Positions 33,818-53,813 of a DNA stretch of 64,000 bases are shown piece after piece. How positions within the stretch are numbered: position 1 is the stretch's first letter; every line of letters begins with the position of its first letter. The notes beneath the pieces are model-generated. The model did no database searches, was not told the origin of the DNA, and saw only the letters and a list, made by a program, of their open reading frames with translations. The translations under genes were made by a program, and so were the position numbers. The DNA is taken from IMG/VR virus record IMGVR_UViG_3300027793_000052, positions 186,001 to 250,000 of that record; one strand, 5' to 3'.

Positions 33818-33979
33818 AATCTTAGTAATATATAAATATTACAAAAGTCTTATAAAAGTAAGACACTTATCACATTAATTCTTATTTATTATTTACTTTT
33901 TAAACACTTTTGAAAAAAGAACAAATATTTATTAGAAAATAGTATATAAACAATAACAAAAGAAAAAAAATAAAATTAA

Positions 33980-36860: not shown

Positions 36861-38615
36861 ATGAAAATAGAATTAATTTGTCAGTGTTGTAATAAACCCT
36901 TTGAAACAGAATTTAAGTTTAGGGATAAAAAGTTTTGTTCAAGAAACTGTTATTTTCAAAATGCTCGTCAAGGCAAAACAAAAATAGGTAGATCCAAAGA
37001 TGAAACAATAAGAGAAACTAGAGAATGTAAGGTTTGTGGTAAAGAATTCGAAGTGAAGAAAAAACAAAACAAACAAATGTGTTCTGACGAATGTAGGGTA
37101 AAATGGGGTAATAGAGATGATGTAAAACAAAAAAGATTAGATACCACTAAAAAAACGGTACAAGAAAAGTATGGTGTTGATCATATTTGGCAAGTTAAAG
37201 AGATACACCAAAAAACCATGGAAAATAGAGATATGGGGGTAGTTTCCACTAAGGTAAGTGAATCTTTAAAATCCAAAACTGATGAAGAAAAGAAAGATAT
37301 TTTAGAAAAAAGAAAAATAACAAAAGAAAAAATATATGGAAACCCATTTTATAACAACCCAAATAAGATATCTAATTCTTTAAAAGTTAGTTATCTTGTT
37401 AATGGTGATACTATAAATGAAAAAAGGGAAAAAACGATGTTAACCAAATACGGTGTTACATCTTCATTACAGTTAGATATCACTAGAGTTAAATTGGAGG
37501 AGATTAGGGATGAGGTTACAAAGAAGGGTGTTGAAGTCAGGAAGGCAAAGTATATAGAGTATTTAAAATCTAGATTAGAAGATAATAACCTATGTATATT
37601 ATCTGAGTATGATAAAAATAAGGAAGGTACCAAAAGTATAGAATATGAGTTTAAATGTTTAAAGTGCGATAATATTTTTACATCAACTGTGTTAGGTAGT
37701 GGTAAAATACCTATATGTAGAAAATGTAACCCAACATTTACAGAAACACATATTAGTAATAAAATAAAAGAGGTTTTAGATTTATATTCTATTAATTATA
37801 TACAGAATGATAGGAGGTTGATAAACCCATATGAGTTAGATTTTTATTTACCTGAACATAATTTAGCATTCGAAATTAATGGTAATTATTATCATTCTGA
37901 AATTGGTGGTGGTAAAGATAAATTTTATCATATAGATAAAACAAAATTAGCTAACCATAAAAACGTTAAAGTAATTCAACTATATGAGGATGAAATTATC
38001 CAAAACTTTGAAATAGTTAAAAGTAAGATTTTACACTTTATCGGAAAACAGGAAAATAAGATATACGCAAGAAAGTGTGTGTTAAAATTAATAGACAATA
38101 AAACTTCAAGAAAGTTTTTAGATGAAAACCATTTACAAGGTAATAGTAAATCATCTGTTAAATTAGGATTGTACCATCAAGATAAGTTGGTTTCTGTTAT
38201 GACATTCTCTAAGGGTAGGGTTGTAACATCGAATAGTGGTTGGGAGTTAATTAGGTTTTGTAATAAAAAATATACTTCTGTTATTGGTTCATTCAATAAA
38301 CTATTAAATTATTTTACCAAAAACTATGAGTTTGATGAGTTGATAACTTATTGTGATATTAGATGGTCGGGTATTAAACCAGAAGATACTGTATACTACA
38401 AAAATAATCTAAAGTTTGTTGGATTTACACCACCTTCCTATTGGTATATGGACAGGAAAAATTATAATTATAGACTACATAGATTTAACTTTAGGAAATC
38501 CAAATTAGTATCTGAAGGTTTTGATGTTAATAAAACTGAATGGGATATAATGAAAGAACGTGGTTTTGATAGAATATGGGATTGTGGTACAATGAAATTT
38601 ATTTATAATAAATAA
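36861..38615 (+). mobile_element. Putative free-standing endonuclease (Zn-finger + PD-(D/E)xK-like + C-terminal GNAT/Mom-like domain), copy 1
   Basis: CxxC/FCSRNC motifs; KYGV repeats; ELDFYLPEHNLAFEINGNYYH nuclease motif; YARKC...HLQG...WELIRFC...RIWDCG C-terminal domain. Confidence 0.75.
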
Positions 38616-38618
38616 AAT

Positions 38619-39317
38619 ATGAAACAGTTAATAAAAAAAATATTAGACGAAAACTTAAAAAGAATTATTGTAACAGACGAAAATAGGTTTGATTATGATA
38701 TAACGGAGTCTTTTGATAAACCATCTAATAATGTAAAAAAGATGGATGATTTTTTTTATGAGGTTATAGAAGATGGTGTTAAATCACATTTTAATTTTAG
38801 AATAGAATTTAATAATAATTATTTTAATGATTTTAGGTGGATATCGAATGATGTTGATGTTTTTTATGATTTTTCTTGGGATTACGAATCAAATGTGTCT
38901 AGGGGTGATAAAATAAAATATTGGAAAACGATGACAACAACATCTTTTAAGATATTGGATGATTTTATAAGAACTATGAACCCTAAGGTTATAAAATTTG
39001 GTGATAGGTATACCGGCAATTTTAAAGTCTACTTTCATGAACAATTTTTAAAAATATTAAAATCAATATTTGGTCAAAATTACGATGTGATAGATTATTC
39101 CGATAAAAATGTAATATTTTTGGTTAAAAAAGAGTTTGTAATTTTAGAAGGTACTTCTGTAAGAAAACGTATGGAATATTTAGGTGAGACATTAGCTGAA
39201 GCTGAAAACTATTGGAAATATCCACATAAGAGAAAAAGACAAATGAAAGGTATTATAAAGAATGATTACCGTAAGGAACAAATAAAACGTATTATAAATA
39301 AACTAAGATATACCTAA
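38619..39317 (+). CDS. Hypothetical protein with N-terminal MKQLIKKILDE motif
   Basis: ORF; shared N-terminal peptide. Confidence 0.75.
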   Translation: MKQLIKKILDENLKRIIVTDENRFDYDITESFDKPSNNVKKMDDFFYEVIEDGVKSHFNFRIEFNNNYFNDFRWISNDVDVFYDFSWDYESNVSRGDKIKYWKTMTTTSFKILDDFIRTMNPKVIKFGDRYTGNFKVYFHEQFLKILKSIFGQNYDVIDYSDKNVIFLVKKEFVILEGTSVRKRMEYLGETLAEAENYWKYPHKRKRQMKGIIKNDYRKEQIKRIINKLRYT

Positions 39318-39319
39318 AT

Positions 39320-39347
39320 AAAAGCCCATAGAAATATGGGCTTTTTT
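39320..39347 (+). terminator. Intrinsic terminator
   Basis: AAAAGCCCATA-GAAA-TATGGGCTTTTTT. Confidence 0.85.
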
Positions 39348-39370
39348 AATGCCAAAACTATTTATATAAT

Positions 39371-39670
39371 ATGTTAGAACATTTTGATATATTACATCTA
39401 TTATTAGCTTACACAGGTTTGTTAATACATGTAATATTAAAATTGGCACAATTACCTGGAAGTTTATTTGAGAATATTACAAAGAAAGATATATTGGTTG
39501 TTTTGGCATCCATTCTAAGTATTCCTGTAATTCTAATAGTATGTAGTGACACAGCAATGAAAGAATTTTTACCTATTAATAATGTTACAGCATTTTTAGC
39601 CGGATATCAAACACAATCATTTTTAAAAACTTTTTCAAATTTTACTAAAAAAGTAAATAAACAAGAATGA
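39371..39670 (+). CDS. Small multi-TM membrane protein (holin-like, uncertain)
   Basis: 2-3 hydrophobic segments and a basic C-terminus; no endolysin in the window to support a holin role. Confidence 0.5.
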   Translation: MLEHFDILHLLLAYTGLLIHVILKLAQLPGSLFENITKKDILVVLASILSIPVILIVCSDTAMKEFLPINNVTAFLAGYQTQSFLKTFSNFTKKVNKQE

Positions 39671-39710
39671 TTTTTATTAAATAAAGCATATTTATATATA
39701 AAAAACGACT

Positions 39711-39938
39711 ATGTCAAAAATTATTAAAAAACAAGATATCACTGTACTTATTGAAAGTACTTTAAAATCTGCTGGTATTGAACCTAAATTTGAAGGTGAA
39801 AAAGAAGTTGTATCAGAATCTAAAGTTGAGGGAGTTGTTACCGAAACTAAAAAAGAAGAAAAACCTTTAATAAACGAAGACTTCCAAAACGAAATGGATA
39901 GATTCAAAAAATTAACAAATTATACTTTTAAAAAATAA
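39711..39938 (+). CDS. Small acidic hypothetical protein (putative head core/internal peptide)
   Basis: 75 aa with multiple (I/V)-x-E sites; C-terminal LINE...EMDRFKKL. Confidence 0.65.
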   Translation: MSKIIKKQDITVLIESTLKSAGIEPKFEGEKEVVSESKVEGVVTETKKEEKPLINEDFQNEMDRFKKLTNYTFKK

Positions 39939-39944
39939 TTAAAA

Positions 39945-40472
39945 ATGGCAACAAGATATAAATTAACAAAAGACCAATTAGAAAGAATCGTTGAAAATTT
40001 CGTAATGGAATCAGCTTCTATAGAAAGTAAGAAAGCCCCTGTGAAAAATCATATACCATCACAAGGTGCTGAAGCTAAGAAACACGTTAAAAATAAGATA
40101 ACTGGTGATATTGTAGAACCTAGTGAAGGTGTACCAGCAAAACCTCCTGTAATGAAAAAGAAATTATCACAGGCTGCTGACGCTAAAAAACATGTTTCAA
40201 ATTCTAAAATGAAACATTCTAACAAGGCTAAAGTTGTTAAAGAAGAAAAAGAACAATTGATTAAAGAATTTCTTGGTGAATTCTCCGATGTGGATGTAAT
40301 GTCGGTAAGTCAGATTATTACTGTGGTAATGGCTATGTTGGGTATAGTTGGTGTAGCAGCTTGGAGATCTTTAAAAGAACCTACCAAAAAGAAATTGATG
40401 TCTTCTAAACATAAAGAAGTTGCTGACAAAATCATCAACAAGATTGATGACGAGGTGTCTAAGAAAAGTTAA
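39945..40472 (+). CDS. Hypothetical protein with internal repeat and C-terminal TM helix
   Basis: QGAEAKKHVKNK / QAADAKKHVSNS repeat; hydrophobic IITVVMAMLGIVGVAAW. Confidence 0.7.
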   Translation: MATRYKLTKDQLERIVENFVMESASIESKKAPVKNHIPSQGAEAKKHVKNKITGDIVEPSEGVPAKPPVMKKKLSQAADAKKHVSNSKMKHSNKAKVVKEEKEQLIKEFLGEFSDVDVMSVSQIITVVMAMLGIVGVAAWRSLKEPTKKKLMSSKHKEVADKIINKIDDEVSKKS

Positions 40473-40491
40473 TTTAATTATTAATTATAAT

Positions 40492-40524
40492 AAAAAAGGG
40501 TGATTATATAATCACCCTTTTTTT
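40492..40524. terminator. Bidirectional terminator between convergent genes
   Basis: AAAAAAGGGTGATT-ATAT-AATCACCCTTTTTTT. Confidence 0.88.
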
Positions 40525-40802
40525 ATGTCATCATCTGTTAAATCGTTAAAATCGAAAAACTCATCGGTCTTTCCGTTATTCAATTGGTCTACCCAGTAAC
40601 ATTTTTCTAAATAAGATTTTATAGAATCTATTAAAATATGACAAACTATGATTAGTCTGATTAAATCAAACCAAAAACCTAAAGAAACAAAAAAAACAGT
40701 TAAAAACATTAATAAAGATACTACAAGTTTAATATGGAAATCTTTATTCCAAAAGTTTATAGCGAATTCTATTTTTTCTGTTTTATTGAATATTGGTTTC
40801 AT
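40512..40802 (-). CDS. Small two-TM membrane protein
   Basis: Two hydrophobic segments; preceded by a consensus Bacteroidota-type promoter. Confidence 0.7.
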   Translation of the reverse strand: MKPIFNKTEKIEFAINFWNKDFHIKLVVSLLMFLTVFFVSLGFWFDLIRLIIVCHILIDSIKSYLEKCYWVDQLNNGKTDEFFDFNDLTDDDIKKG

Positions 40803-40824
40803 GTCTGTTTATTGTTTAATAATA

Positions 40825-40856
40825 CAAATATAAGTAAAGTTTTAAATATACACAAA
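40825..40856 (-). promoter_or_regulatory. Bacteroidota sigmaA-type promoter (TTTG-N20-TATATTTG)
   Basis: Exact -33/-7 consensus upstream of 40802. Confidence 0.75.
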
Positions 40857-40871
40857 TAAATTTTTATCAAT

Positions 40872-40896
40872 AAAAATGGGGGTATTTAACCCCCAT
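40872..40896 (-). terminator. Terminator after SPFH gene
   Basis: ATGGGGG/CCCCCAT stem followed by a T tract on the minus strand. Confidence 0.75.
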
Positions 40897-40900
40897 GTTA

Positions 40901-42142
40901 CTATTTACTAGTTTTCATATCTAAATTAATCTCTTTGGCTGTTTTTGCCATCATTAATTGGATTAGTGACGCCGCCTCTGTATTATGAGAACTACCATTC
41001 CCACCCATAACTGTAGTAGGAACCCAATTACTATTACTCATAGCTGCCGCGTATTCTTTATTAACTTTTACCCAAGCATCTAATTTTTGTTCTAATGCTC
41101 CATTAGCCTGAATAACTGCTCTTTTCTTATACGCCTCAGCGTCGGCTAGAATTTTAACCTTTGACGCTTCTTCGGTTGCCGCCATTTTAGCTATACGTTG
41201 TTGTTCCAAATCCTGTTTTGCTAACTCCACCTTAGTTTGAGCAGCTACTACCTGTTTGGTCTGTTCTTGTTTTTGAGTGTACTCAATCTCTACAAGTTTC
41301 TTCTTACCCTCAGCCTCAGCCGTTAAAGCCTGTTGTTGTGCTGTCATTAACCTCTGTTTAGATACGGAGGCCGCTGTTGACGCGTCAATTTTCTTAGCTA
41401 ACATATCATCAACTCGTTTCTCATAATCCACATCGGTAATAGAAGCGTCAGCCACTGTAATACCATATTCTTTAATACTAGACACTTTACGTTTAACTTG
41501 ACCATTCTTATCAGTTTGTACTACTGTTTGATATATACGTTTTTTGGCTTTTTCTAATGAATCATATTCAACATATTCCTTTGTTTGTAAAATAAAAGTG
41601 CCACTCTTTAATTGGTCAATATAATCTTGTGACATCTGTGCTCTACCACCAGAATAATGCATTTCAGAACTCATTAACTGAGCCGCTGATTGTAAACATT
41701 CTTTGGTGTATGGTGACAGTCTTTTAGTTACCAATGATTGTGGTGTCCTATGTGTATTATGTATTAATATCATATCCTTTTCATCATTTGGTAATATGTA
41801 TTGGGCTATACCAGATACATCGGCAGTAGTAGCATCCCCACCAAAACGAACACCTATTTTACCTATTTCAATACCATTATCTTCTAACTCTAGATTAGCC
41901 TCTTGTTTAGAATATGATACTGAAATCTGATTTGGCCAAGAAGTTTTCTTAGCGAATAACCCAGCGTAATAAACACCAGATTCAAATTGGACGAATTGTT
42001 TACCACTCATTTGTTGAACCACTGTTCTTTCACCAGCGTCATTCCAAGCAAAAGGGTTAACAAATAAAAACATAATAATAGCTAATACAGATACTACACC
42101 TGTTACAACCCATTTAATGGGGAATTTTTGATTTTCAAACAT
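40901..42142 (-). CDS. SPFH/band-7 (prohibitin/flotillin-like) membrane protein
   Basis: N-terminal TM; SPFH-like core (YGITVADASITDVDY); long AE/AQ-rich coiled coil; C-terminal WVP..VMGG. Confidence 0.85.
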   Translation of the reverse strand: MFENQKFPIKWVVTGVVSVLAIIMFLFVNPFAWNDAGERTVVQQMSGKQFVQFESGVYYAGLFAKKTSWPNQISVSYSKQEANLELEDNGIEIGKIGVRFGGDATTADVSGIAQYILPNDEKDMILIHNTHRTPQSLVTKRLSPYTKECLQSAAQLMSSEMHYSGGRAQMSQDYIDQLKSGTFILQTKEYVEYDSLEKAKKRIYQTVVQTDKNGQVKRKVSSIKEYGITVADASITDVDYEKRVDDMLAKKIDASTAASVSKQRLMTAQQQALTAEAEGKKKLVEIEYTQKQEQTKQVVAAQTKVELAKQDLEQQRIAKMAATEEASKVKILADAEAYKKRAVIQANGALEQKLDAWVKVNKEYAAAMSNSNWVPTTVMGGNGSSHNTEAASLIQLMMAKTAKEINLDMKTSK

Positions 42143-42143
42143 G

Positions 42144-42419
42144 TTATTTTAGATTTTTGGTTTTTTCTTTGATTTGTTTTACTTTTTCTAACTCTTCCTT
42201 CCAATGTTGGAGGTCTTTTTCGGCACCTTCAATACCTTCAGAGGCGTTTATTTCTGCCCTTGTTATTTTCAATTTAATCACTTCGATTAAATGTTCAACC
42301 TCTTCGGAGGTGGTTTGTTTTTTATCGTTTTGTTTAAACGACTCCAATATTTTGAATCCTGCATATACTGTAACTGTTATGAGACCCAAAATTACAAAAA
42401 ATATTAATAGCCTGAACAT
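42144..42419 (-). CDS. Single-TM coiled-coil protein (possible SPFH partner)
   Basis: N-terminal TM and charged helical tail; 1 nt from the SPFH start. Confidence 0.7.
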   Translation of the reverse strand: MFRLLIFFVILGLITVTVYAGFKILESFKQNDKKQTTSEEVEHLIEVIKLKITRAEINASEGIEGAEKDLQHWKEELEKVKQIKEKTKNLK

Positions 42420-42439
42420 ATTTTTTTATTTTTTTTTAA

Positions 42440-43120
42440 TTATTTAAAAGGAACTACTTCATCTATAATACCGTAAGCTAAAGCCTCTTTAGATGATAAC
42501 CATAAGTCACGACTAGCATCCTCCATAACTTGTTTAGGGTCCTTACCACAATATTCACCCAATAATTCAAAAAGGGTTTCATTGATTTTTTCCCATTCTT
42601 TCATTGTAATACGTGCGTCTTGGATGTTACCCATAGCACCACCACTAGATTGGTGTAACATTGTTCTAGAAAACCTTAAAGAACTTCTCATCCCTTTGGT
42701 GCCAGCACCTAACAATACTGAACCCATAGATGCTGCCATACCTGTGTTAATGGTAGCTATTGGTGCCTTTGTTACGGACATTGTATCCACTATAGATAAA
42801 CCTGACTTAACAGAACCACCTGGACTATCAATATGCATAGTAATTCTTTTCTTAGAATCTTGTTGATCCAAGAAAAGTAGTTGTGCTTGTACAATAGTCG
42901 ACATTCTGTCATTAACAGGTCCTGCCACCCAAAGGATACGGTCCATCATCAATCTGTCGAATACCGAAATTACTGTAGCGTTCATTTGTCTTTCTTCCAC
43001 AACTGCGGGTGTCATACTACCCTGAACCATTGGTATTTGTGACATAAAGGATTGGTATGCATGTAATGTGTTGGAACCAATATATTGGTCTTTGATTGCA
43101 AATTTTTCAAATTCTGTCAT
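42440..43120 (-). CDS. clpP: ATP-dependent Clp protease proteolytic subunit
   Basis: IDSPGGSV, GMAASMGS (catalytic Ser), MLHQ (His), RDLWLS (Asp), EALAYGIIDEV. Confidence 0.95.
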   Translation of the reverse strand: MTEFEKFAIKDQYIGSNTLHAYQSFMSQIPMVQGSMTPAVVEERQMNATVISVFDRLMMDRILWVAGPVNDRMSTIVQAQLLFLDQQDSKKRITMHIDSPGGSVKSGLSIVDTMSVTKAPIATINTGMAASMGSVLLGAGTKGMRSSLRFSRTMLHQSSGGAMGNIQDARITMKEWEKINETLFELLGEYCGKDPKQVMEDASRDLWLSSKEALAYGIIDEVVPFK

Positions 43121-43142
43121 ATTTTATTAATTTTTGTTTAGG

Positions 43143-43174
43143 TAAAGATATTTATAATAAAATTAATTGTCAAA
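43143..43174 (-). promoter_or_regulatory. Near-consensus Bacteroidota promoter for clpP operon (TTTG-N20-TATCTTTA)
   Basis: One mismatch in the -7 box; overlaps the plus-strand ATATTTAT at 43148-43155. Confidence 0.5.
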
Positions 43175-43185
43175 AAAATATACAC

Positions 43186-45705
43186 ATGATTACAAAAGCT
43201 GAGTTTGAAAAAGCAATGGAAATGGACCGTCAACAAACAATAAAGGAGTTGATGGAGAACTGTGACCTATTATTAAAAGGTAACCGTATGTTAACTGAAA
43301 ATAGATTATCAGAATCGGAATATATGGTTCTAGAAGAAGGTCTTTGGGAAAAGGTTAAATATGGTTTGGCTAAATTAGGTCGTTACAAAGCAGGTGGTAA
43401 AATATTCGGTAAAGGTAAGATAGACCAAGAGGCTGGGGCTAAAATACAAGCTATATTAGATAAAAAAGGTAATGAGGTTATTAAAGCTTTAGATACTAAA
43501 ATTAAAGAAGAAAACCCTGAATTTCCTAACAACGAAAAAGGTGAACAATTCTTAAAAACCGTTATGGAAATAGCGGCAGTATATGATTCTATAGTAGCTT
43601 CCACTAAGAAAAAACCTAACGAAAAAGGATTTTTACCGGCAGATGCGGCCAATTCAGTTATAGCTGATTTAGCCGAATATGTACAAAAATTCTTAGATGT
43701 CGACTTAGCTGCCGCATATACAGTTATGGATTCTGAAGAAGAAAAAGTAGATAAAGAAAATGGTAATGAGGAACTTTTAACTGATGAAGTAGAGGATATA
43801 AATGAGGACGAGGCTGAAGATGTTAGAACACAATTACAATCTAAAGCCGGTAAAAAAACCTACGATACTAAAAGAATGGGTGGTGAAGGTTTGGCATCAA
43901 ATAAATTACCTTTAGTATTGGCTGGATTAGGTGGGGCTTTAGGAGCATTAGGTTGGTTAGCACAAACTGATTTCATTAAAGAAATTATCATTAAAATTTT
44001 TGGTGGTGATATCAATGTAACCGATACTGAAAAAATAACAGAAATAATTAATGGTGGTAATCCAGATTCTGAAGGTTTTGTTCATTGGGCAAGTAAACTA
44101 ATGGGTAAGGACCTTAAAACTGGTGCTGATATTTCAGAATTTGTTAACAAGTTTGGTGCTGAAGATGTTAGTCATATGTTTGATGGTAATGGTGCCGGTG
44201 ATTCAATGACACAAGTTAAACAACTCCAACAATTAGTTGGTGGTGAAAACGCTGGTAAAAGTGTAGGTGAGTTGTTTCAATCAGAAACTTTTGGTGATAT
44301 GAAACAAGGTAGAAACTTGTTTGGTGTGTCTAAGTCGGCTAGTTTTGTTTCTAAAACAATAACAACTGTTGTTAAGAAAACAGTTGTTAAAGGTGCTGGT
44401 ACAGTTATTGCGGCTAAAGTGGCGGCAATAGGTTCTGTTTTAGCCCCAATAGGTATCGCTTTAATAGGTACAGGTGCTTTAGTTAAACTTATGAGGATGA
44501 AAGGTTTAAAACAATCTAGAGCTAAAACACTTAACGATTTACTTCAATCATTACAACCTGTAGAAGCGGGTGAAGCTACAACAGTTCCAATATTACCGGA
44601 TCCTAAACCAAATCCAACGAAAGAAGGTGGTAACGGTAAGAACGATAAAGAAGGTTTATACAACGATTTATTAGGGTTTTTCAAATATACATATAACAAT
44701 AGAAAAATAGGTGGTGTGGAATCATCTGATGATGTCGAAAACACCAGTGATATTCAAGTTGGTAAAGAATATTTCTATACTAATAAGAAAGGTGAAAAAA
44801 ATGTTGTTAAAGTTGTTTCACTATCTAACCAATATAAAGCTGGTGATGATAAAAAATTCGGTACTAATGATGATGAAAAATTAGATAGTATAGAACCTGG
44901 TACAGCTTTCGTTGTGTTTAAAAAACCTAATAACACGTATGGTAACGAACCTGCCAGGGCTGTAAATAAAAAACAATTATCAACAGAAAACATAATGAGT
45001 AACAAAGATGTCATTAACGAAGGTAAATTCATAAAAGACCCACAAGTTATAAAAATATTAGAAAAGAATAAAGGTATAGATAAAAATAAGTTGGCCTTTT
45101 TCGATAACTTCCTAAGAAGAGTAGAGGTTATTAGAAACAAGGTTAATAAGATGGGTAATACTGGTGATAATGTTCTAGACAAGTTTATACAAAAATTAAA
45201 ATCTAACCCACTAATGACAAAAGATTTTGTTAAAACATTTAGTGTTGATCCTAACAACCAACAGAACGTTGAGGCAATGGGTGATTTCATTAATGATATT
45301 ATTGAAATTGTTTATAAAGGTAGATTTAGAGGTGCTAAAATAGAGGATGTAGCTAAAGGTGTCACAACCTTCAATAAAGAAGGTGGTGCCGTTGAGAAAA
45401 TGGGTAAACTAGGTGGTGGTAATATTAATAAGGTTGGTGTGGAGGAATCTTATTTAGTCGAAAGAAAGGGTAAGAAAGCTAAAGCTAAAAGTACCTTTAA
45501 AAACCATATAATAAGTTTCATCACAGACTTAATGGGAATGTTCCAATATATGACAAAACTTAAAAAACAAGGTAAATTATCATCTGACGGTGGTAAAAAA
45601 GAAAGTAAACCTAAACAAGAACCTAAACCACAACAAGAATCTAAAATTTTTACTAATAAAGTCTTACTAGAAGAAATAAGTAGAATTAAAAAATTAATGA
45701 AATAA
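43186..45705 (+). CDS. Large hypothetical protein with hydrophobic hairpins (putative internal/ejected protein)
   Basis: Start moved to ATG 43186, downstream of the ATATTTAT motif; Gly/Ala-rich hydrophobic helices; C-terminal LLEEISRIKKLMK. Confidence 0.75.
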   Translation: MITKAEFEKAMEMDRQQTIKELMENCDLLLKGNRMLTENRLSESEYMVLEEGLWEKVKYGLAKLGRYKAGGKIFGKGKIDQEAGAKIQAILDKKGNEVIKALDTKIKEENPEFPNNEKGEQFLKTVMEIAAVYDSIVASTKKKPNEKGFLPADAANSVIADLAEYVQKFLDVDLAAAYTVMDSEEEKVDKENGNEELLTDEVEDINEDEAEDVRTQLQSKAGKKTYDTKRMGGEGLASNKLPLVLAGLGGALGALGWLAQTDFIKEIIIKIFGGDINVTDTEKITEIINGGNPDSEGFVHWASKLMGKDLKTGADISEFVNKFGAEDVSHMFDGNGAGDSMTQVKQLQQLVGGENAGKSVGELFQSETFGDMKQGRNLFGVSKSASFVSKTITTVVKKTVVKGAGTVIAAKVAAIGSVLAPIGIALIGTGALVKLMRMKGLKQSRAKTLNDLLQSLQPVEAGEATTVPILPDPKPNPTKEGGNGKNDKEGLYNDLLGFFKYTYNNRKIGGVESSDDVENTSDIQVGKEYFYTNKKGEKNVVKVVSLSNQYKAGDDKKFGTNDDEKLDSIEPGTAFVVFKKPNNTYGNEPARAVNKKQLSTENIMSNKDVINEGKFIKDPQVIKILEKNKGIDKNKLAFFDNFLRRVEVIRNKVNKMGNTGDNVLDKFIQKLKSNPLMTKDFVKTFSVDPNNQQNVEAMGDFINDIIEIVYKGRFRGAKIEDVAKGVTTFNKEGGAVEKMGKLGGGNINKVGVEESYLVERKGKKAKAKSTFKNHIISFITDLMGMFQYMTKLKKQGKLSSDGGKKESKPKQEPKPQQESKIFTNKVLLEEISRIKKLMK

Positions 45706-45762
45706 AAAATAAAATTTCAGCATATTTATAATAAAAGATAACACATTAAAAAATAAAATACC

Positions 45763-46251
45763 ATGGCAGATTTATTAATGAGAATGCCGGTTCCATACGA
45801 ACCAAAAAAACAAAATAGATTTATATTAAGATTCCCATCACCACTAGGTATTCAGGAATGGTTTGTTAAAGCAGCTTCAAGACCTAAATACACGTCACAA
45901 GAAACTGAAATTCAGTTCTTAAACACATCTACTTTTGTAACAGGTAGATTTACTTGGGAAACTATAAGTGTAACATTCCGTGACCCTATTGGTCCATCGG
46001 CGGCACAAGCTTTAATGGAATGGGTTCGTCTTCATTCTGAATCCGTAACTGGTAGACAAGGATACGCTGCTGGATACAAGAAAGATGTTGAATTAGAATT
46101 ACTAGATCCAACAGGTGTTGTTATAGAAAAATGGATTTTACAAGGTACAATGTTAAATGATGTAGATTTCGGTTCTTTGGCCTATGATGCTAATGATATA
46201 GCTGAAATTACAGCAACTTTACGTTTCGATAGAGCTATACACGTATTCTAA
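45763..46251 (+). CDS. Tail tube protein (T4 gp19-like)
   Basis: EPKKQNRF, RP......EI.FLN, GR..WE.ISVTFRD, W.R...E...G..GY...YKKD.EL.LLDPTG...EKW.L.G, F.FD.A. Confidence 0.93.
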   Translation: MADLLMRMPVPYEPKKQNRFILRFPSPLGIQEWFVKAASRPKYTSQETEIQFLNTSTFVTGRFTWETISVTFRDPIGPSAAQALMEWVRLHSESVTGRQGYAAGYKKDVELELLDPTGVVIEKWILQGTMLNDVDFGSLAYDANDIAEITATLRFDRAIHVF

Positions 46252-46268
46252 AAATTATTTGTCATATA

Positions 46269-46300
46269 CTTGACAACCAAAATGAAAGTTCATATATTTG
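46269..46300 (+). promoter_or_regulatory. Bacteroidota-type promoter (CTTG-N20-TATATTTG)
   Basis: Exact -7 box 5 nt upstream of ATG 46306. Confidence 0.6.
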
Positions 46301-46305
46301 TATAT

Positions 46306-47889
46306 ATGGACTTTTCTTTTTTTATAACAGACAATAAATCTGGTCATAAGACCAAAGAGTCGTGGTTTTCTAAAAACCACCCAAAGGAATATCAAGCGGT
46401 GATTGATTATTGTGGTAGTAAATTACCAACAGATTCTTCTTTCAAAGAGAAGGTTTGGGTTTATTTCAACGCACTAGATGGTAGACCTTGTTGTGAATCC
46501 TGTGGTTCAACGGTTAAATTTTCGGAAAGGTTCGATAGAGGTTACAATCAGTTTTGTTCGTTGGATTGTGCTAACAAGAGTGGTTTATTAATAGATAAAA
46601 TTAAAAAGTCCAACCTAGAAAACCACGGTGTTGAATTTTACACCCAACACAAAGATTTTGTTGGTAAGCAGAAAAAAACTAAATCAGTTAGATACGGTAA
46701 TGAAAACTATAATAACGTAGGAAAAATGTTATCCACCAAGTTGGATAAATATGGTAATACAAATTATAACAATTTTGACTTATATAAGAAGACGTGTTTA
46801 AATAAATACGGTGAAGATAATTTCTGTAAAACAAAACAATATAGGGATTTATTAAAGAATAAAATTAAGGAAAGATACCCTAATTTAAATATTAAAAATA
46901 TTTCAGAAGATTTATCGGAATTGGAGATTTTGTGTGACGATTGTCACACCGAATATAAGATATCCCAAAGTTTACTTAGAGAACGTGTTAAACACAAATA
47001 TGTTAATTGTACTAACTGTAATCCTGTTGGTATGTCCTTTTCTTCCTCTTATGAAGATGAGTTATCTAAGATATTAAATGAGTGGGGTGTGGCACATTTA
47101 AGACACACCAAAATACCTGGTACTAAGTTAGAATTAGATATTTTAATACCACAAATTAACCTCGCCATCGAATTCAATGGGTTATTTTGGCATAACGAAC
47201 TTTTTGTTAACACTGAGTATCATTTAAATAAGACGGAATTGTGTGATAAAAACGGAATGGATTTAATACATATATTTGAGGACGAGTGGTTGTATAAAAA
47301 AGATGTGGTACTATCTATAATAAAAAACAAATTAGGGTTGATTACCCAAAGGGTATATGCCAGAAATTGTAGGATTAAATTAGTAACAAGTGGTCAACAT
47401 AAAGATTTTTTAGAGGATAATCACATACAAGGTTCTGTCAACACAACAATCAAATTGGGTTTATTCTATGGTGACGAATTAGTTTCATTAATGACCTTTG
47501 GTAGACGAAATGGTATTGGTAAAACTATAGATTGGGAACTTATTAGATTTTGTAATAAAAAAGATACGATCGTTGTTGGTTCAGCATCTAAGTTATTTAA
47601 ATATTTTATAAAAAACTATGAACCTAAAAATGTTATCTCTTACTCTGATAGAAGGTGGTTTTCGGGTGAATTATATCAATTGTTAGGGTTTAAACCAACA
47701 ACACCATCTCAACCAAATTATTGGTACGTTAATAATACGATTAGATACCATAGATTAAATTTCAAGAAAAACGTTTTGGTTAAACAAGGGTTTGATAAAA
47801 ACAAATCTGAACGTGAAATAATGTTTGAACGTGGATATTACCGTATATATGATTGTGGTAATATAAGATGGGAATATTTTTCTGAATAG
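46306..47889 (+). mobile_element. Putative free-standing endonuclease (Zn-finger + PD-(D/E)xK-like + GNAT/Mom-like), copy 2
   Basis: CESCG/FCSLDC; KYG repeats; ELDILIPQINLAIEFNGLFWH; YARNC...HIQG...WELIRFC...RIYDCG. Start set at MDFSFF (46306), after the promoter. Confidence 0.75.
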
Positions 47890-47924
47890 AAGAATATTTA
47901 TCAAATAGATATATTTCTAACGAA

Positions 47925-48353
47925 ATGAAAAAATTTATATTAACTTTTTTATTTTTCTTTATTTGTTTAACTTCTTTATGTCAAACAAATTATATTTTTA
48001 CGACCAAAGAATATAATACTTGGAAAGTTTCTGGTAACCCTATTTGTGGTGTGGGCAATGCTTATTGTACCGTGATTAGAAGTAACCAGCCCAATATTTA
48101 CGGTAATTATATATATGAAATATATTTTGCCACAAATTCTTATTTTGTTAATTGCCAAGTTTCTAGAACTTATATTCCAAACATATATGTCTACTATTAT
48201 GATGATAAATTAAACAAATATTTATTACCATTAAATTTTTACCCTTTTTGGATAACTGTCGGTAGTACAAGTTTAGTTTATACATTGTATCACCCCAACC
48301 CCTATTTAAAATTAACCATTTCGGTGGGTAAAATGGAACCAACAAATTATTAA
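47925..48353 (+). CDS. Secreted/periplasmic protein with Sec signal peptide
   Basis: MKKFILTFLFFFICLTSLC followed by Q. Confidence 0.7.
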   Translation: MKKFILTFLFFFICLTSLCQTNYIFTTKEYNTWKVSGNPICGVGNAYCTVIRSNQPNIYGNYIYEIYFATNSYFVNCQVSRTYIPNIYVYYYDDKLNKYLLPLNFYPFWITVGSTSLVYTLYHPNPYLKLTISVGKMEPTNY

Positions 48354-48355
48354 AA

Positions 48356-48736
48356 ATGTCAAATAATATACAAGATAATGAGGTAAATATCGGTCCCCAA
48401 AAAATTGGTCCCAATACCGTAATTCAAATAAATTTAAAAACTTTATTAACATTATTAGGTATTTTGGGGTCTGGGCTTTTTTATCTTTGGTCTGACATAA
48501 GTAATAAGGTTGAGGCTTATAATAAATCCAATTATGACCAAATAGAAACTTTGAAGGATGAAATTAGGTCAATAAAGGATCAAGATTTAAAAACAATTTC
48601 AATTCAATTAAATCAAGTTGATGGTAAGGTTCAAGGAATTTTTATGAATGTTCAACGAGATATTTATAATCCAAATACTGTTGTAAATACCAATCGTCAA
48701 CCTGAAAATATAATAAAACCTAATAGTCCAAAATAA
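48356..48736 (+). CDS. Single-TM coiled-coil membrane protein
   Basis: LLTLLGILGSGLFYLW followed by a heptad-like segment. Confidence 0.7.
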   Translation: MSNNIQDNEVNIGPQKIGPNTVIQINLKTLLTLLGILGSGLFYLWSDISNKVEAYNKSNYDQIETLKDEIRSIKDQDLKTISIQLNQVDGKVQGIFMNVQRDIYNPNTVVNTNRQPENIIKPNSPK

Positions 48737-48744
48737 TATTTCAT

Positions 48745-49149
48745 ATGAATATTAAACATATAATTAAGGAACAACTTATTCTAGAGAAAAAGATAGCTCA
48801 GATAACCGCTAACCTCATAATTAATTTTGATTTAAGACATGACGAGAGAAGTGAACATGGTCAAGACAGAAAGTGGAGACATGTTGGCAAAGCTGGTGGT
48901 GAAAGAATATATGATAGTAATATAAAAGATCTTATTGAATGGGCTAAAAACGATATAAGTTTTAATATAGCAATGGAACAAATTCAAGACAATGTACGTT
49001 TTATTGTTTCACAAAAAAATTCACCATATTTAAATGTTATAATAGAACCAAAAATGAAAAATCCTTATGATTGGGTTCTTAGTGTCATCACTGTCATGAA
49101 TAAACAAGATTTCGATATAGGTCGAGGACAATTACAAATATTTGTATAA
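48745..49149 (+). CDS. Putative RelE/BECR-fold ribonuclease-like protein with N-terminal IIKE motif
   Basis: EHGQDRKWRH (H-x-x-x-R-x-x-R) and C-terminal VITVM pattern. Confidence 0.45.
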   Translation: MNIKHIIKEQLILEKKIAQITANLIINFDLRHDERSEHGQDRKWRHVGKAGGERIYDSNIKDLIEWAKNDISFNIAMEQIQDNVRFIVSQKNSPYLNVIIEPKMKNPYDWVLSVITVMNKQDFDIGRGQLQIFV

Positions 49150-49150
49150 T

Positions 49151-49187
49151 TAAAAACCCCACTAGTATTCTGACTGTGGGGTTTTTA
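49151..49187. terminator. Bidirectional terminator
   Basis: TAAAAACCCCAC-N13-GTGGGGTTTTTA. Confidence 0.85.
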
Positions 49188-49295
49188 TTTTTCACCATTA
49201 ATATCCGTTAATGATTGAGGAGTTTCACCTTGACGTTTCGTGTCATTACGTTGATTAGGTTCAAGGGACTAACCAATTCAACCCTGTTTCTTTAA
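49151..49295 (-). ncRNA. Candidate ~145-nt small RNA (or 12-aa micropeptide mRNA)
   Basis: Bounded by a consensus promoter (49301-49331) and a terminator; the only ATG-initiated ORF is MTRNVKVKLLNH (49246-49208); several potential stems. Confidence 0.45.
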
Positions 49296-49300
49296 CAATA

Positions 49301-49331
49301 CAAATATAAATATCTTTTAATTAATGGCAAA
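49301..49331 (-). promoter_or_regulatory. Bacteroidota-type promoter (TTTG-N19-TATATTTG)
   Basis: Exact consensus; overlaps a same-strand ATATTTAT at 49306-49313. Confidence 0.75.
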
Positions 49332-49362
49332 ATTTTTTCAATAAAAAAGATATTTATATGAT

Positions 49363-49845
49363 ATGAAAGATTTAATTCGTAAAATATTAAAAGAAAACGA
49401 AGATGAGTTTGGTTGGGTTGAGGCTGACGAACATTCAATAGAACAAGGAAAAAAAATTGTTTATGAAAAATGGCGTCAAATTGAAATGGATTTTGGTGCT
49501 GATTTGGAAGATGTTTTTGATGAATTGAAAGATTTTGGTGTATACGACCCTAAACAATTATTAAGTATGGCTGAAATATTGTACGATCAATTTCAAGAAG
49601 TTCACGATAACGGACATCGTGATGGTTATGATTCTGGTATGGATAATTGTACTTGTGATGGTTGTTGTGATGATTATATATGGTATGAAACTCATGAAGA
49701 AGAAGTTGAGGAAGCGAGGGAAGAAGGTTATGAAAGGGGTAAAGAAGAAAGTGAATCCGAAATAGAAGAATTAAAATCTAGAATAGAAGAATTAGAAAGT
49801 CAATTAAATGAAAACATTAATAAAAAAAATACTAAGAGAATCTGA
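49363..49845 (+). CDS. Acidic hypothetical protein with MKDLIRKILKE motif
   Basis: ORF; CTCDGCC cluster; C-terminal coiled coil. Confidence 0.75.
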   Translation: MKDLIRKILKENEDEFGWVEADEHSIEQGKKIVYEKWRQIEMDFGADLEDVFDELKDFGVYDPKQLLSMAEILYDQFQEVHDNGHRDGYDSGMDNCTCDGCCDDYIWYETHEEEVEEAREEGYERGKEESESEIEELKSRIEELESQLNENINKKNTKRI

Positions 49846-50284
49846 TTTTGAATGGGCTAATGAGTTCATTAATAATGAAACTCTGCCTTTTGAAATTGTC
49901 AAAGAACCCTTAAACAAACCACAAAAAAGTAATCTTTTTGTTATGAAAACAGAGTGGGAATATGCTGATACATATCTTAGGGAAGAATTTGTTTTTCATT
50001 CTGAAGATCCAAAAGAATTTGAAACTTTTGTTAATGTTTGTAAATTTTATTTGGTTCTATTGGATTCTCGTGGTTATAGTATATGGAAAGATGTGTCGGT
50101 ATTAGCCAAAAGTATTGATTTGGCTTTGGGGTCTTATGATGACGAAGACGCCTATGGTACATCTAAAGACATGTCAGATTTTGTTGCTGGTTCTGATGTT
50201 CCAGCTTATCTTGAAAGTGTTGAAATTTCTTATTTTGATGAAGGTGGTGTTGAATATGAAGTTAGATTAAAAGAACCTGATTAA
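49808..50284 (+). CDS. Acidic hypothetical protein with MKTLIKKILRE motif
   Basis: ORF overlapping the previous gene by 38 nt; shares IL-x-E...F-x-W N-terminus. Confidence 0.75.
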   Translation: MKTLIKKILRESDFEWANEFINNETLPFEIVKEPLNKPQKSNLFVMKTEWEYADTYLREEFVFHSEDPKEFETFVNVCKFYLVLLDSRGYSIWKDVSVLAKSIDLALGSYDDEDAYGTSKDMSDFVAGSDVPAYLESVEISYFDEGGVEYEVRLKEPD

Positions 50285-50285
50285 C

Positions 50286-50315
50286 AAAAAAAGGGACCGT
50301 TAAGTCCCCATTTTT
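50286..50315. terminator. Probable bidirectional terminator
   Basis: A7-GGGAC-N6-GTCCC-CA-T5 between convergent genes. Confidence 0.6.
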
Positions 50316-51306
50316 ACCAATCAAAATCGTATTTGGATTTATCATCATAATTACCACCGTTATAATAAGGATTTTTATTACTTCTATCTGATCCTAGAAA
50401 CTCTCCATTATTGAATAATAAATCAAAATCATCGTCATCATCTAAGTCATTAAAAAAATCACTTTTTTTTTCTTCATTTAATAAACCTCTATTGTTTGAG
50501 TTACTAAAAGAATAGGTTTTTTCTTGTTTACGATTTTCATATTTTTCTTCACCCAATTCAGATATTAATTTAAGACCTAATTCAAAACCGTTTTGGACAT
50601 CGTCGATAATAACATATTCATGGTCAGTATGATAACGATAATAGCCGGCCGCTAAGTTAAGACAAGCTATATCAAATTTCCCAACAATTTGCCAAGCGTC
50701 AGTGTAAGGGTGGTATGCCCAATCATCAATTCCAGCTTCTGTAATTAAACCCGTAACCTTGTTAGCGAATTCACTTTCTTGATTAAATAAGTAACGTCCC
50801 ATAAGTGTTAAACTCATGGAATTACCTTCAGGTGAGTCGTATTGAATACCATAACCAACATTCTTAAAGAATTCAGGGTCAGCGTACTTACTACCTTGAC
50901 ACCCTATTTCTTCAGATACAAAGAAAGCTGCCTTAACGTTTTCTAATGTGTCTAACATCTCTAAACATAGAAACACCCCACACTTGTCATCACCACCGAT
51001 ACCTGACGGTTGTTTGGTCTTACCATCAATACCTCTAAGTATTTGTTTACCGTCCTTAACTTCTTCAACCACTTTTAGGTTTAAGTTAACTCTGTGCACA
51101 GTATCAGTATGTGAAATAAAACATGGGTACCATTCAGCTTTACCTTTGGTTGCGTAAATATTACCGTGTGTGTCTGTATAATGTTCTATACCTTTTTCTG
51201 TTAGAACTTTCTGAAGATACTCAATCATTAACTTCTCATTTCTAGAATGAGTAGGTACTGATAGTACTTCTTTTAAACGATTGAGTTTTTCTTGTGTCAT
51301 TTTCAT
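50314..51306 (-). CDS. Zinc aminopeptidase, M28/M42/M20-like
   Basis: SHTDTV, GGDDKCG, SEEIG, QYD and YHTDHE metal-ligand motifs. Confidence 0.88.
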   Translation of the reverse strand: MKMTQEKLNRLKEVLSVPTHSRNEKLMIEYLQKVLTEKGIEHYTDTHGNIYATKGKAEWYPCFISHTDTVHRVNLNLKVVEEVKDGKQILRGIDGKTKQPSGIGGDDKCGVFLCLEMLDTLENVKAAFFVSEEIGCQGSKYADPEFFKNVGYGIQYDSPEGNSMSLTLMGRYLFNQESEFANKVTGLITEAGIDDWAYHPYTDAWQIVGKFDIACLNLAAGYYRYHTDHEYVIIDDVQNGFELGLKLISELGEEKYENRKQEKTYSFSNSNNRGLLNEEKKSDFFNDLDDDDDFDLLFNNGEFLGSDRSNKNPYYNGGNYDDKSKYDFDW

Positions 51307-51327
51307 CTTTGATTCTATTTGTTATTA

Positions 51328-51358
51328 CAAACTTACTAATTTAATCATTATTGGCAAA
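51328..51358 (-). promoter_or_regulatory. Bacteroidota-type promoter (TTTG-N19-TAAGTTTG)
   Basis: Exact consensus 22 nt upstream of the peptidase ATG. Confidence 0.75.
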
Positions 51359-51468
51359 ACTAATTTTAATAAAAATGTGAATTAAATCTATTTATTAATA
51401 AACCTTTACATATTAAAACAAGGTTTTATTATTAGTCTGAATAACAAATTTAAAAAAAAGTTTTAAAC

Positions 51469-52245
51469 ATGTCAAATGTAAAACAACAAACACAAGAGAT
51501 TCAATTTCAAACACCATTCGATGTTATACCTTTGCCATCAAAAGGTTTATTATATCCAGGTCAAAATGGAAATGTAAAAGTTGAATATATGACAGCTATG
51601 GATGAAAACATCTTAACATCACCTAATTTAATTAAGAGTGGTAAAGTTATTGATGTTTTAATGGAAAGGAAAATAAAAGAAGCACCAGTACCTTTTGAAC
51701 AATTATTGGTGGGTGATAGAAATGCTATTATGATTTGGTTACGAGCTACAGGGTATGGTGAAATTTATCCTGTTAAATTAACTGATCCTAATAGTGGTGT
51801 TGAATTTGAGTATGAGGTCGATTTAAGTCAATTAAAGTCTAAGCCCTTACTTGATGGTATAGAACCTGATGAAAACGGTGAATTTTCTTTTGAATTACCT
51901 AGAAGTAAGAAAATGATTAAGTTTAAACTTTTAACAGTGGGTGATGAAAAAAGCATTGCTTCAAAAACTGAAAAATATGAAAAAGCCACTAAGTCACAAA
52001 TATCAAATACATTAACTTATAGATTACAAACACAAATTAAAGAAGTTGATGGTAATAGAGATATAAACTTTATACAACAATTTATAAATGTAATGCCAGC
52101 TTACGATTCACTTAAGTTTAGAGAATATTCAGATAAAATTGAACCAGGAATAGACATGTCGGTTGAGGTGGAGGGGCCGACTGGTACATTTCAAGCTCCA
52201 ATTACCATCGGACTCAACTTTTTTTGGCCTAACGTCAGAATATAG
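51469..52245 (+). CDS. Baseplate hub assembly/tail assembly chaperone, T4 gp26-like
   Basis: IPLPSKG..Y, V.YMTA.DENILTS, GDRNAI.I.LR...YG, F.LP.SK..I.FK.LT..DE; ends NFFW. Confidence 0.8.
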   Translation: MSNVKQQTQEIQFQTPFDVIPLPSKGLLYPGQNGNVKVEYMTAMDENILTSPNLIKSGKVIDVLMERKIKEAPVPFEQLLVGDRNAIMIWLRATGYGEIYPVKLTDPNSGVEFEYEVDLSQLKSKPLLDGIEPDENGEFSFELPRSKKMIKFKLLTVGDEKSIASKTEKYEKATKSQISNTLTYRLQTQIKEVDGNRDINFIQQFINVMPAYDSLKFREYSDKIEPGIDMSVEVEGPTGTFQAPITIGLNFFWPNVRI

Positions 52246-52273
52246 TTTAAGTTTACGTAGGGAAATATATTAT

Positions 52274-52417
52274 ATGGTAAAACATATGAGATTTTCTTAC
52301 GAATCTGTTCAAAATATGCCAGTATGGGAAAGAAGGATTTTTCTGGATTTATGGCAAAAAGAACTAGAGGAACAAAAACAGGAATATGAAAAAATTAAAA
52401 ACAAATCTAAAAGATAA
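52274..52417 (+). CDS. gp51-like small chaperone segment (probably also made as a frameshift fusion with the upstream ORF)
   Basis: MRFSYESVQNMPVWERRIFL matches the gp51-like M-P-x-W-E-R motif; the frame is open well upstream of this ATG. Confidence 0.7.
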   Translation: MVKHMRFSYESVQNMPVWERRIFLDLWQKELEEQKQEYEKIKNKSKR

Positions 52418-52442
52418 AATGGGGCTAATAGTCCCATTTTTT
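52416..52442 (+). terminator. Intrinsic terminator
   Basis: AAAATGGGGCT-AAT-AGTCCCATTTTTT. Confidence 0.75.
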
Positions 52443-52472
52443 ATTTATGTGATATTTATAATATAAACTATA

Positions 52473-53813
52473 ATGATAATAAAGGTTAAAGATATTATTA
52501 AAGAAGTTGATGTTACTGGCGGAAAATACAATCCATTGAACCCTTACGCTTCTGAACCTTCTGATCCTACAAGAGTTATAAAAAATTTAGGTGGTGACGA
52601 TGCTGGTTCAGCTGAAGCACGTTCAGAATATCTTAGAGATAAAATAGAACAAAACTTTAGTAAGTTAGGTATACCCGCTTATGACCTAAGGTCTTATATG
52701 AAAATACAGGGTATATATACTGAAGAATTATTAAAAAGTTATACCCAACCATTTGATTTTTCTTTTATGAAAGAAAATGGTGAAAAATTTTCTGGTAAAG
52801 CCACTTATAATAAAGAATTATCTAAACAAAATAATACTATAGTTTTAAATTTTAATAATGGTAGTATAATATTTTCTCAGGATTCTATTAAAAGACCTTT
52901 CTTAGCTAAAAAAGGTTTTTGGGCTAAATATAAAGAAAAGTTATCATTAAGGGGTCTACAAACTAATTCTATTTTTGACGTAAAAATAATCGGTAATATC
53001 TCTAATACCAACCAAGAAGGCGGTGATAAAAAAGGTTCAGAAAATTATAAAGTAGGTGATAAGGTTAATTTTAAGACAAATGATGGTAAATTAGGTTCTG
53101 GTACGATTTCAAAAATAGATGGTGATAACTATGTTATCGGTGACGGTAAAGGTGGTGAAATTACTATCAAAAAAAGTAATATAACATCTAAAATAGACAT
53201 TTCAACTAAAAAAGAGGATAATAAACAAATAGGTCTATATAATGATTTAGCAGGATTTTTTAAGTTCATTTTTAATAGTAATAAAAAGTTACAAAATAAA
53301 ATAAATACAGTAGAGTCTATAATAGATGATATATCTAAAAGTCTTTTAATTACAGAACAAGATGAACAATCTACTCCGATAGAAAAAATTAAAATTTTAA
53401 AAATAGGTATATTAGGTGATTTATACCCAAAAGAAGATGATTCTGACACATCAGGAGGTTCAGTAGATAAGATTCCTACTGATGAATATGTAAAATGTAA
53501 GGCAGAATTAAAATTTAAAGAAGAAGATGATGGTTTCTTTAATAAACAACTAAAGAAACAAATACAAGATGGTTTAAAGAACGGTAATTTTTTTGTTAGA
53601 ATGTCACAAAAACCAAAAGGTATTGTGTTAATATTCAGTAAAACAGAAAATCAGTCCGGTGATTTCTTCACATTAGCAGGTCAAAATATAAAATCACCAA
53701 AAGACCCTAAACAGTGGAAAGGTAATGTTAAAGTCGGTAAGAAGGCTTTGGGTGATAAAGATTTTGAGGGATCAGACGCTCAAATAAATAATTTGGTTTT
53801 AATGAATAAATAA
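52473..53813 (+). CDS. Hypothetical protein with KDIIKE N-terminus, sharing modules with 43186
   Basis: GLYNDL-x-GFFK motif and a KVGDKV SH3/KOW-like module. Confidence 0.75.
   Translation: MIIKVKDIIKEVDVTGGKYNPLNPYASEPSDPTRVIKNLGGDDAGSAEARSEYLRDKIEQNFSKLGIPAYDLRSYMKIQGIYTEELLKSYTQPFDFSFMKENGEKFSGKATYNKELSKQNNTIVLNFNNGSIIFSQDSIKRPFLAKKGFWAKYKEKLSLRGLQTNSIFDVKIIGNISNTNQEGGDKKGSENYKVGDKVNFKTNDGKLGSGTISKIDGDNYVIGDGKGGEITIKKSNITSKIDISTKKEDNKQIGLYNDLAGFFKFIFNSNKKLQNKINTVESIIDDISKSLLITEQDEQSTPIEKIKILKIGILGDLYPKEDDSDTSGGSVDKIPTDEYVKCKAELKFKEEDDGFFNKQLKKQIQDGLKNGNFFVRMSQKPKGIVLIFSKTENQSGDFFTLAGQNIKSPKDPKQWKGNVKVGKKALGDKDFEGSDAQINNLVLMNK

Follow-up and report, generated by a model that had tools for sequence, protein, structure and literature searches.

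A recurring N-terminal peptide on otherwise unrelated proteins of giant T4-like phages, a candidate capsid-targeting tag

Why should proteins that have nothing else in common begin with the same eleven residues? The question is raised by a stretch of 64,000 nucleotides from IMG/VR virus record IMGVR_UViG_3300027793_000052 (bases 186001-250000, here called the window). A first-pass annotation had noticed that the products of three of its genes, at 38619, 49363 and 49808, start with a near-identical peptide, and had proposed that this peptide recruits a varied payload into the phage head for injection. The three N-termini read exactly as it gave them. The whole record, 317,983 bp at 30% G+C and judged 96% complete, is by its sequence a T4-like giant phage. 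Positions below are those of the window unless they are marked as genome positions, which refer to the whole record.

The shared peptide, which we call the class A tag, is an 11-residue N-terminus of the form M-(K/R)-x-L-I-(K/R)-K-I-L-x-E. The genome-wide N-terminal motif search that the annotation had asked for was carried out with a hidden Markov model (HMM) of the first 12 residues against all six-frame open reading frame (ORF) segments. It gave 16 matches at 18.4-24.8 bits, all exactly at Met1, including the three in the window, and the next best score was 9.5 bits. Two further copies came up with the model: one lies inside a fused gene (genome 80454), and the other belongs to a gene that starts with GTG (genome 65063). 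Matched strictly, the class A pattern occurs 20 times genome-wide, where residue shuffles lead one to expect 0.41 (3 in the richest shuffle), and the reversed pattern does not occur in the genome. The bodies were said to be otherwise unrelated, and BLASTP of the bodies without the first 12 residues bears this out: the only mutual match is between two paralogs that are 40% identical, genome 11853 and window 38619.

Two further classes share with class A the core (L/I)-(I/V)-K-K-I-(I/L)-x-E. Class B is the looser form …I-(K/R)-x-I-I-K-E-x-L-(L/I)-x-E, with 28 matches against 0.74 expected, mostly within five residues of Met1, and class C is a 22-residue N-terminus typified by MKKVIKLTENDIEKLVKKIINE. 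The looser N-termini that the annotation had grouped with the tag at 48745, 1961 (minus strand) and, weakly, 52473 thus find their place in a second class. Its remaining loose forms divide: 39945 fits class C, and the N-termini at 39711 and 43186 match none of the three classes. A body family resembling the 38619 protein, recognised by an 'ESFDxP' motif, bears the class A tag in some contigs and class B in others, so the classes look interchangeable. About 29 genes of the genome are tagged, most of them outside the window. At genome 80025-80831 two tagged genes are fused in frame; the second tag is kept internally as …ETKSLIKKILKENEWEWA, and ACA replaces the start codon of the second gene. The tagged genes in the window are the following.

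38619..39317, plus strand: class A gene, 232 amino acids; tag MKQLIKKILDE coded by 38619-38651.
49363..49845, plus strand: class A gene, 160 amino acids; tag MKDLIRKILKE coded by 49363-49395, followed by acidic-aromatic DEFGWV.
49808..50284, plus strand: class A gene, 158 amino acids; tag MKTLIKKILRE coded by 49808-49840; overlaps the end of the 49363 gene.
48745..49149, plus strand: class B gene, 134 amino acids; N-terminus MNIKHIIKEQLILE.
1623..1961, minus strand: class B-like gene, 112 amino acids; N-terminus MDIRKLIKEE.
52473..53813, plus strand: weak class B-like gene of uncertain membership, 446 amino acids, just upstream of the tape-measure gene; N-terminus MIIKVKDIIKE.
39945..40472, plus strand: class C-like gene, 175 amino acids, with a C-terminal membrane helix; N-terminus MATRYKLTKDQLERIVENFVME, which fits the class C pattern.

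The window's tagged proteins fall in no Pfam or PHROGs family. An AlphaFold2 model of the 38619 protein (mean predicted local distance difference test score 79.6) has a helix at residues 2-13, a disordered linker at 14-30 and a confident globular domain at 31-232, so that the tag helix is detached from the body. A fold search with this model returned weak GNAT matches only (E 0.03 or worse, template modelling score 0.24-0.40), and the modelled body is at best weakly GNAT-like. Orthologs of the 38619 protein retain the tag with variations, the 49363 and 49808 gene pair is conserved in IMG/VR contigs, and the orthologs of 48745 there conserve M-I-(R/K)-x-I-I-K-E-x-L-L-L-E. For the 49363 protein, a search for look-alikes in the ESM Atlas gave nothing usable.

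The tag extends well beyond this genome. A scan of IMG/VR with a degenerate DNA pattern for class A found at least 119 loci; among the matches listed, nearly all stand at an ORF start, in contigs of about 30% G+C and often with gATATTTATa just upstream. Pooled with the genome's own copies, they give at least 136 distinct tagged proteins (median 162 amino acids) whose bodies form at least 72 clusters at E<1e-5. Among the 136 proteins listed, tag positions 1, 4, 5, 7, 8, 9 and 11 are near-invariant, position 2 is Lys or Arg, and positions 3 and 10 are free. The tag ends with Leu or Ile at 9, a variable residue at 10 and Glu at 11 in 136 of 136; for the IMG/VR set the search pattern itself demanded Glu11, but the HMM did not demand it for its 16 matches. 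Conservation collapses past residue 11-12. Complete relatives of 295-380 kb carry 1-5 exact-pattern copies each.

It is the peptide that is conserved. Codon choice at the conserved positions is about as varied as elsewhere in the genome (TTA, CTA, CTT and CTC for Leu4; AAA, AAG, AGA, AGG and CGT at position 6), with a mild bias at Ile8, where 85% of copies use ATA compared with 47% genome-wide. On this synonymous variation we reject a DNA-level repeat as the explanation and take the peptide, not the DNA, to be the object of selection. The tag is real and specific to a clade of uncultured giant T4-like phages. It appears to be undescribed so far, the motif being absent from the searchable literature, and whatever its function it provides a sharp marker of the clade.

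Recognisable domains among the tagged bodies are few. A 769-residue enzyme with CCA-adding (PolyA_pol) and 2H-phosphoesterase domains is encoded at genome 135696-138005, and an enzyme of this kind also at IMG/VR locus L087; other bodies match Peptidase_C39/C70 (locus L070), L5_gp82, GP88, a zinc ribbon and, weakly, Acb1. Two cargo bodies were searched for in cultured relatives, and no homologs were found there. Of the class A tags listed, 30% run on into an acidic-aromatic motif, (D/E)(D/E)-F-x-W-(A/V), which recurs in larger proteins at apparent internal module boundaries. It is found at these sites.

49402-49419 and 49844-49858 in the window: acidic-aromatic motif.
6264, 135696 and 40204 in the genome: acidic-aromatic motif.

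What might such a peptide do in a T4-like phage? The genome encodes a Peptidase_S77 (gp21-type) prohead protease at genome 138056-138868 (PF03420, E 7e-31, 104.7 bits), 34% identical to T4 gp21 and keeping the ELNHP and SSRG motifs with the conserved His and Ser. A gp23-type major capsid protein lies at genome 142300-144069 (PF07068, 209.6 bits), and portal, terminase and acidic scaffold-like protein genes surround the two, the scaffold gene being at genome 140787-142268. In alignment with T4 gp23, the capsid protein has L-I-S-E|T at the site of T4's L-T-E|A, and the capsid protein of the 'immuto' phages has I-V-S-E|A at the same position; by this alignment, the capsid protein would be processed at its I-S-E site. 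The protease itself carries a conserved N-L-I-K-E near its own N-terminus, and a small head-operon protein neighbouring it begins MNFIDRVILE|A. In this genome the protease gene is directly followed by class C genes. Two close relatives and several more IMG/VR contigs show the same arrangement, and in one of these contigs three class C genes stand there in a row. This position ties the core motif to the head-morphogenesis operon. The protease is also present in all three of the other tag-bearing records tested (98-100% completeness).

The tagged genes are also set apart by what stands upstream of them. The promoter-like motif ATATTTAT is 12-fold enriched upstream of genes and precedes those for terminase, portal, protease, scaffold, sheath, tube and fibre, and the genes for DNA polymerase, ribonucleotide reductase, DnaB and SbcC are without it. 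Of the tagged genes, 14 of 29 have ATATTTAT in the 70 nt upstream, compared with 73 of 371 among all others (p 0.0015). A host-type motif, TAnnTTTG, which we take to be the Bacteroidota -7 promoter box, precedes none of the 29 tagged genes against 47 of the 371 others (p 0.036). This bears on the annotation's question whether the motif is equally common in early genes, and suggests that it may not be, as far as timing can be read from promoters. Window examples of gATATTTATa are at 49350-49357, 45722-45729 and 33925-33932; it often stands just 5-8 nt before the ATG, implying nearly leaderless mRNAs. The annotation had placed most tagged genes downstream of such a motif, and in the window this is borne out in part: ATATTTAT lies before 49363 (gap 5) and 52473 (gap 13), as it does before the unclassified 39711 and 43186 (gaps 15 and 30), and only a variant lies before 38619.

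49350..49357, plus strand: promoter-like motif ATATTTAT, 5 nt upstream of the 49363 gene's ATG.
38599..38606, plus strand: variant promoter-like motif TTATTTAT, 12 nt upstream of the 38619 gene.

We propose, with a probability of roughly 0.52, that the tag in its classes A, B and C serves a clade of uncultured T4-like freshwater phages, with genomes of 295-380 kb, as a portable capsid-targeting propeptide. The basic amphipathic tag helix would dock late-made cargo onto the acidic scaffolding core of the prohead; the gp21-type protease would then cleave on the C-terminal side of the invariant Glu, which would be P1, with Leu/Ile at P3 and P2 free, and the released cargo would remain in the head and enter the host along with the DNA. 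Core binding, cleavage, packaging and injection of the tagged proteins are all parts of this proposal, and the cargo may be counter-defence or take-over effectors. The model for it is the capsid-targeting sequence (CTS) of T4, which spans 10-19 residues, the first ten sufficing for encapsidation; early residues serve targeting, and residues 8 and 10 serve processing (PMC9026906). The T4 internal proteins are described as diverse defence proteins with only the CTS in common (PMC3012670). The propeptides in the T4 record read MKTYQEFIAE|A (IPII, IPIII) and MAKINELLRE|S (gp24); they are of similar length to the tag and, like it, close with hydrophobic-hydrophobic-x-Glu. The pattern of variation in the tag fits the same rule, with P3 and P1 fixed, P2 free and conservation ending at the predicted scissile Glu. 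The analogy drawn in the annotation holds on every point that sequence can address, except for two additions. The further (L/I)-x-E sites that it saw in the bodies have an observed to expected ratio of 1.17 in tagged bodies and in all other proteins alike, and the C-terminal E-x-x-R-x-KKL occurs only two or three times in the genome, at chance level and in no family.

Several observations weigh against this proposal. The late expression that it assumes for the tagged genes is read from the genes that share their promoter motif. About 29 tagged genes in one genome far exceed any known CTS set, and the tagged CCA-adding/2H-phosphoesterase enzyme could equally act in the cytoplasm. Class A genes do not cluster with head genes, the protease being found in 3 of the 119 loci listed, about the chance level. 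A complete 131-kb record with a single weak tag match has no S77 match. The nearest cultured phages have no tag, even with two mismatches allowed, and some orthologs have Pro at position 11 (K-P-E) or have lost the tag. A receptor other than the scaffold is possible, with ClpP found in every complete tag-bearing relative tested and a ClpC-like unfoldase encoded here. Among the three protease-bearing loci, L087 and L124 resemble this genome in that the genes for the CCA enzyme and the protease diverge.

The tag could instead be a general docking or localisation helix, binding a membrane or a hub protein outside the capsid, with no cleavage. It is an ideal short basic amphipathic helix, hydrophobic at positions 1, 4, 5, 8 and 9 and Lys or Arg at 2, 6, 7 and 10, and both its detachment from the body in the 38619 model and the cytoplasmic-type enzymes among the cargo would suit such a role. 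However, six positions stay near-invariant over at least 72 families and many contigs, which points to a single dedicated protein as the receptor and not to lipid. The tag also ends in agreement with the T4 protease rule, and it is linked to the head operon and to the virion-gene promoter motif. We consider this unlikely, and a generic docking or membrane helix ranks for us among the weaker rivals, with the two readings at the DNA and remnant level taken up below.

A more specific receptor is offered by the phage's own proteolytic machinery, for which the tag could be an N-terminal degron or adaptor signal that sets protein lifetimes. N-terminal degrons for Clp ATPases are known, and the genome encodes ClpP at window 42440-43120 (Pfam E 1e-57) together with a ClpC-like 839-residue double-AAA unfoldase with a V-G-Y ClpP-docking loop (genome 111681-114200, minus strand). 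With ClpP also in the complete tag-bearing relatives tested, a Clp recognition signal is a genuine rival. Nevertheless, ClpP occurs in two of four tag-less relatives as well, and its partner here is an SPFH protein, an arrangement like that of stomatin/NfeD operons. The tagged genes stand behind the virion-gene promoter motif and not the host-type one, and clearing late-made proteins makes little sense. Such a signal would also leave unexplained the invariant Glu with its free P2 and the class C genes in the head operon. The profile of the tag against ClpP and gp21 across relatives does not discriminate between them. Overall, we regard a Clp signal as improbable. The operon in question (window 40901-43120, minus strand) comprises the gene of a 413-residue SPFH/band-7 protein, a 91-residue ORF and ClpP, and lies between the sheath and tube genes.

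The conserved unit could also be a nucleic-acid element, such as the boundary of a recombination cassette or a leaderless translation start, with the peptide as a by-product. Many tags lie 5-8 nt after ATATTTAT, so that the mRNA begins with the tag codons, and the ATA preference at Ile8 could be taken in the same sense. Against this, Leu, Ile, Lys, Arg and Glu codons vary synonymously, with CGT, AGA and AGG all used for Arg; other genes lying equally close behind the promoter motif encode N-termini of unrelated sequence, and the motif is missing from about half of the tagged genes, which makes this reading very improbable. Least credible is a functionless N-terminal remnant of one old, fast-diverging paralog family, for which some true paralogs (genome 11853, window 38619) and the frequent tandem arrays speak, but the at least 72 body clusters include distinct folds and domains (PolyA_pol, Peptidase_C39, L5_gp82, zinc ribbon, GNAT-like), and a neutral remnant would not stay near-invariant up to a sharp drop in conservation after residue 11.

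If the capsid-targeting propeptide is the right reading, a large group of giant phages not yet in culture would have its injected proteome laid open by N-termini alone, and with it a catalogue of candidate first-strike counter-defence or take-over proteins, most of them without a known family. The CTS principle of T4 would then be ancient, changeable in its consensus and scalable to dozens of cargoes, and a second, sequence-distinct tag for packing foreign proteins into phage heads would be at hand. A broader claim, to which we give somewhat less than an even chance, is that the clade loads an open-ended arsenal by means of one interchangeable 11-residue label and two sister labels, to be injected before gene expression. 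The arsenal would comprise at least 72 families in the clade and about 29 genes here, including a tRNA-repair-type enzyme, a papain-like protease and GNAT-like proteins. If true, no known virion cargo system would be larger or more modular, and the label would be a natural plug-and-play tag for packaging.

The setting of the tagged genes is as follows. The window is the tail module, with sheath (33980), tube (45763), baseplate hub protein (51469) and tape measure (53813), broken up by accessory genes that include two HNH homing endonucleases, the SPFH-ClpP operon, a peptidase and many small ORFs. Among cultured phages, Rhodothermus phage RM378 and the 'immuto' phages of Flavobacterium have the nearest capsid proteins (29-41% identity), and to judge from the sequences the lineage is that of T4 and Far-T4, not phiKZ. 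Sequencing runs with matching DNA are mostly labelled freshwater metagenome. The host would be a member of the Bacteroidota, since the presumed Bacteroidota-type -7 box TAnnTTTG precedes 47 genes; the tag-bearing clade as a whole probably infects freshwater Bacteroidota. Freshwater metatranscriptome assemblies include window 45600-51400, at a depth uneven between genes: 19-38 for the tube gene, 2-5 for the homing endonuclease, 1-2 in three runs and 26 in one for the 49363 gene, and 4-26 for the 49808 gene. The tag region of the genome-39472 gene was found as a separate metatranscriptome contig. Since these assemblies contain them, genes of the window region are transcribed in nature, although the data are blind to strand and timing, and the phage is active in several of the sampled communities.

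A few neighbours deserve mention in their own right. The two large HNH homing endonuclease genes within the tail module (36861-38615 and 46270-47889, plus strand) are paralogs that belong to phrog_3339, with a third copy at genome 107183-108868, and the first stops 3 nt short of the tagged gene at 38619. Beside the tagged gene at genome 11853, a 184-residue ORF (genome 11262-11816) is a near-verbatim repeat of a stretch of the major capsid protein, containing …WTPELAQD…AEAELTALL…, a capsid-gene fragment far from the head module. The 839-residue protein encoded at 43186-45705 and the 446-residue protein at 52473-53813 have in common a 'GLYNDLxGFFK' segment and Lys/Gly-rich low-complexity regions; the former gene precedes the tube gene and the latter the tape-measure gene, with ATATTTAT upstream of both. 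A single ORF of 2,687 residues (21220-29283, plus strand) occupies the tail-fibre region, with ATATTTAT 61 nt upstream. Finally, the members of a paralog family at genome 45795, 55049, 99389 and 123707 share a longer N-terminal domain (…EGRLEDVKKKYPxVD…), with ATATTTAT before all four, and one of them lies directly upstream of the terminase gene.

How does the tag compare with known systems? In encapsulins and bacterial microcompartments, a short amphipathic helix on a flexible linker likewise sends unrelated enzymes into a protein shell. Their peptide, however, is usually C-terminal and is not removed, and the shell holds no genome and injects nothing. The phiKZ-like phages (phiKZ, 201phi2-1, SPN3US) are also giant phages with a T4-type prohead protease, which processes many inner-head proteins that are later ejected, among them paralogs with conserved N-termini (PMC5694885). 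Their propeptides are mostly longer than 100 residues and cut at (S/A/G)-x-E, with no single short portable consensus, unlike the tag. In T4, as here, a short N-terminal peptide is all that unrelated small proteins have in common (IPI, IPII, IPIII and Alt, with the gp24 propeptide), 10-19 residues long there against 11 or about 22 here, and the peptide ends in hydrophobic-x-Glu, which is the gp21 cleavage rule. Both encode gp21-, gp22-like and gp23-type head genes, and in both the cargo genes are scattered and hypervariable. The present system differs from T4 in having three tag classes, in counting a large tRNA-repair-type enzyme among its cargo, and in its predicted scale: T4 has a handful of such genes, whereas the one genome here has about 29 tagged genes and the clade at least 72 putative cargo families. 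The consensus differs too, as the annotation had recognised: strongly basic MKxLIKKILxE here has only the starting Met-Lys and the final hydrophobic-x-Glu in common with MKTYQEFIAE, so that the tag would be at most an analogue or a distant variant of the T4 CTS.

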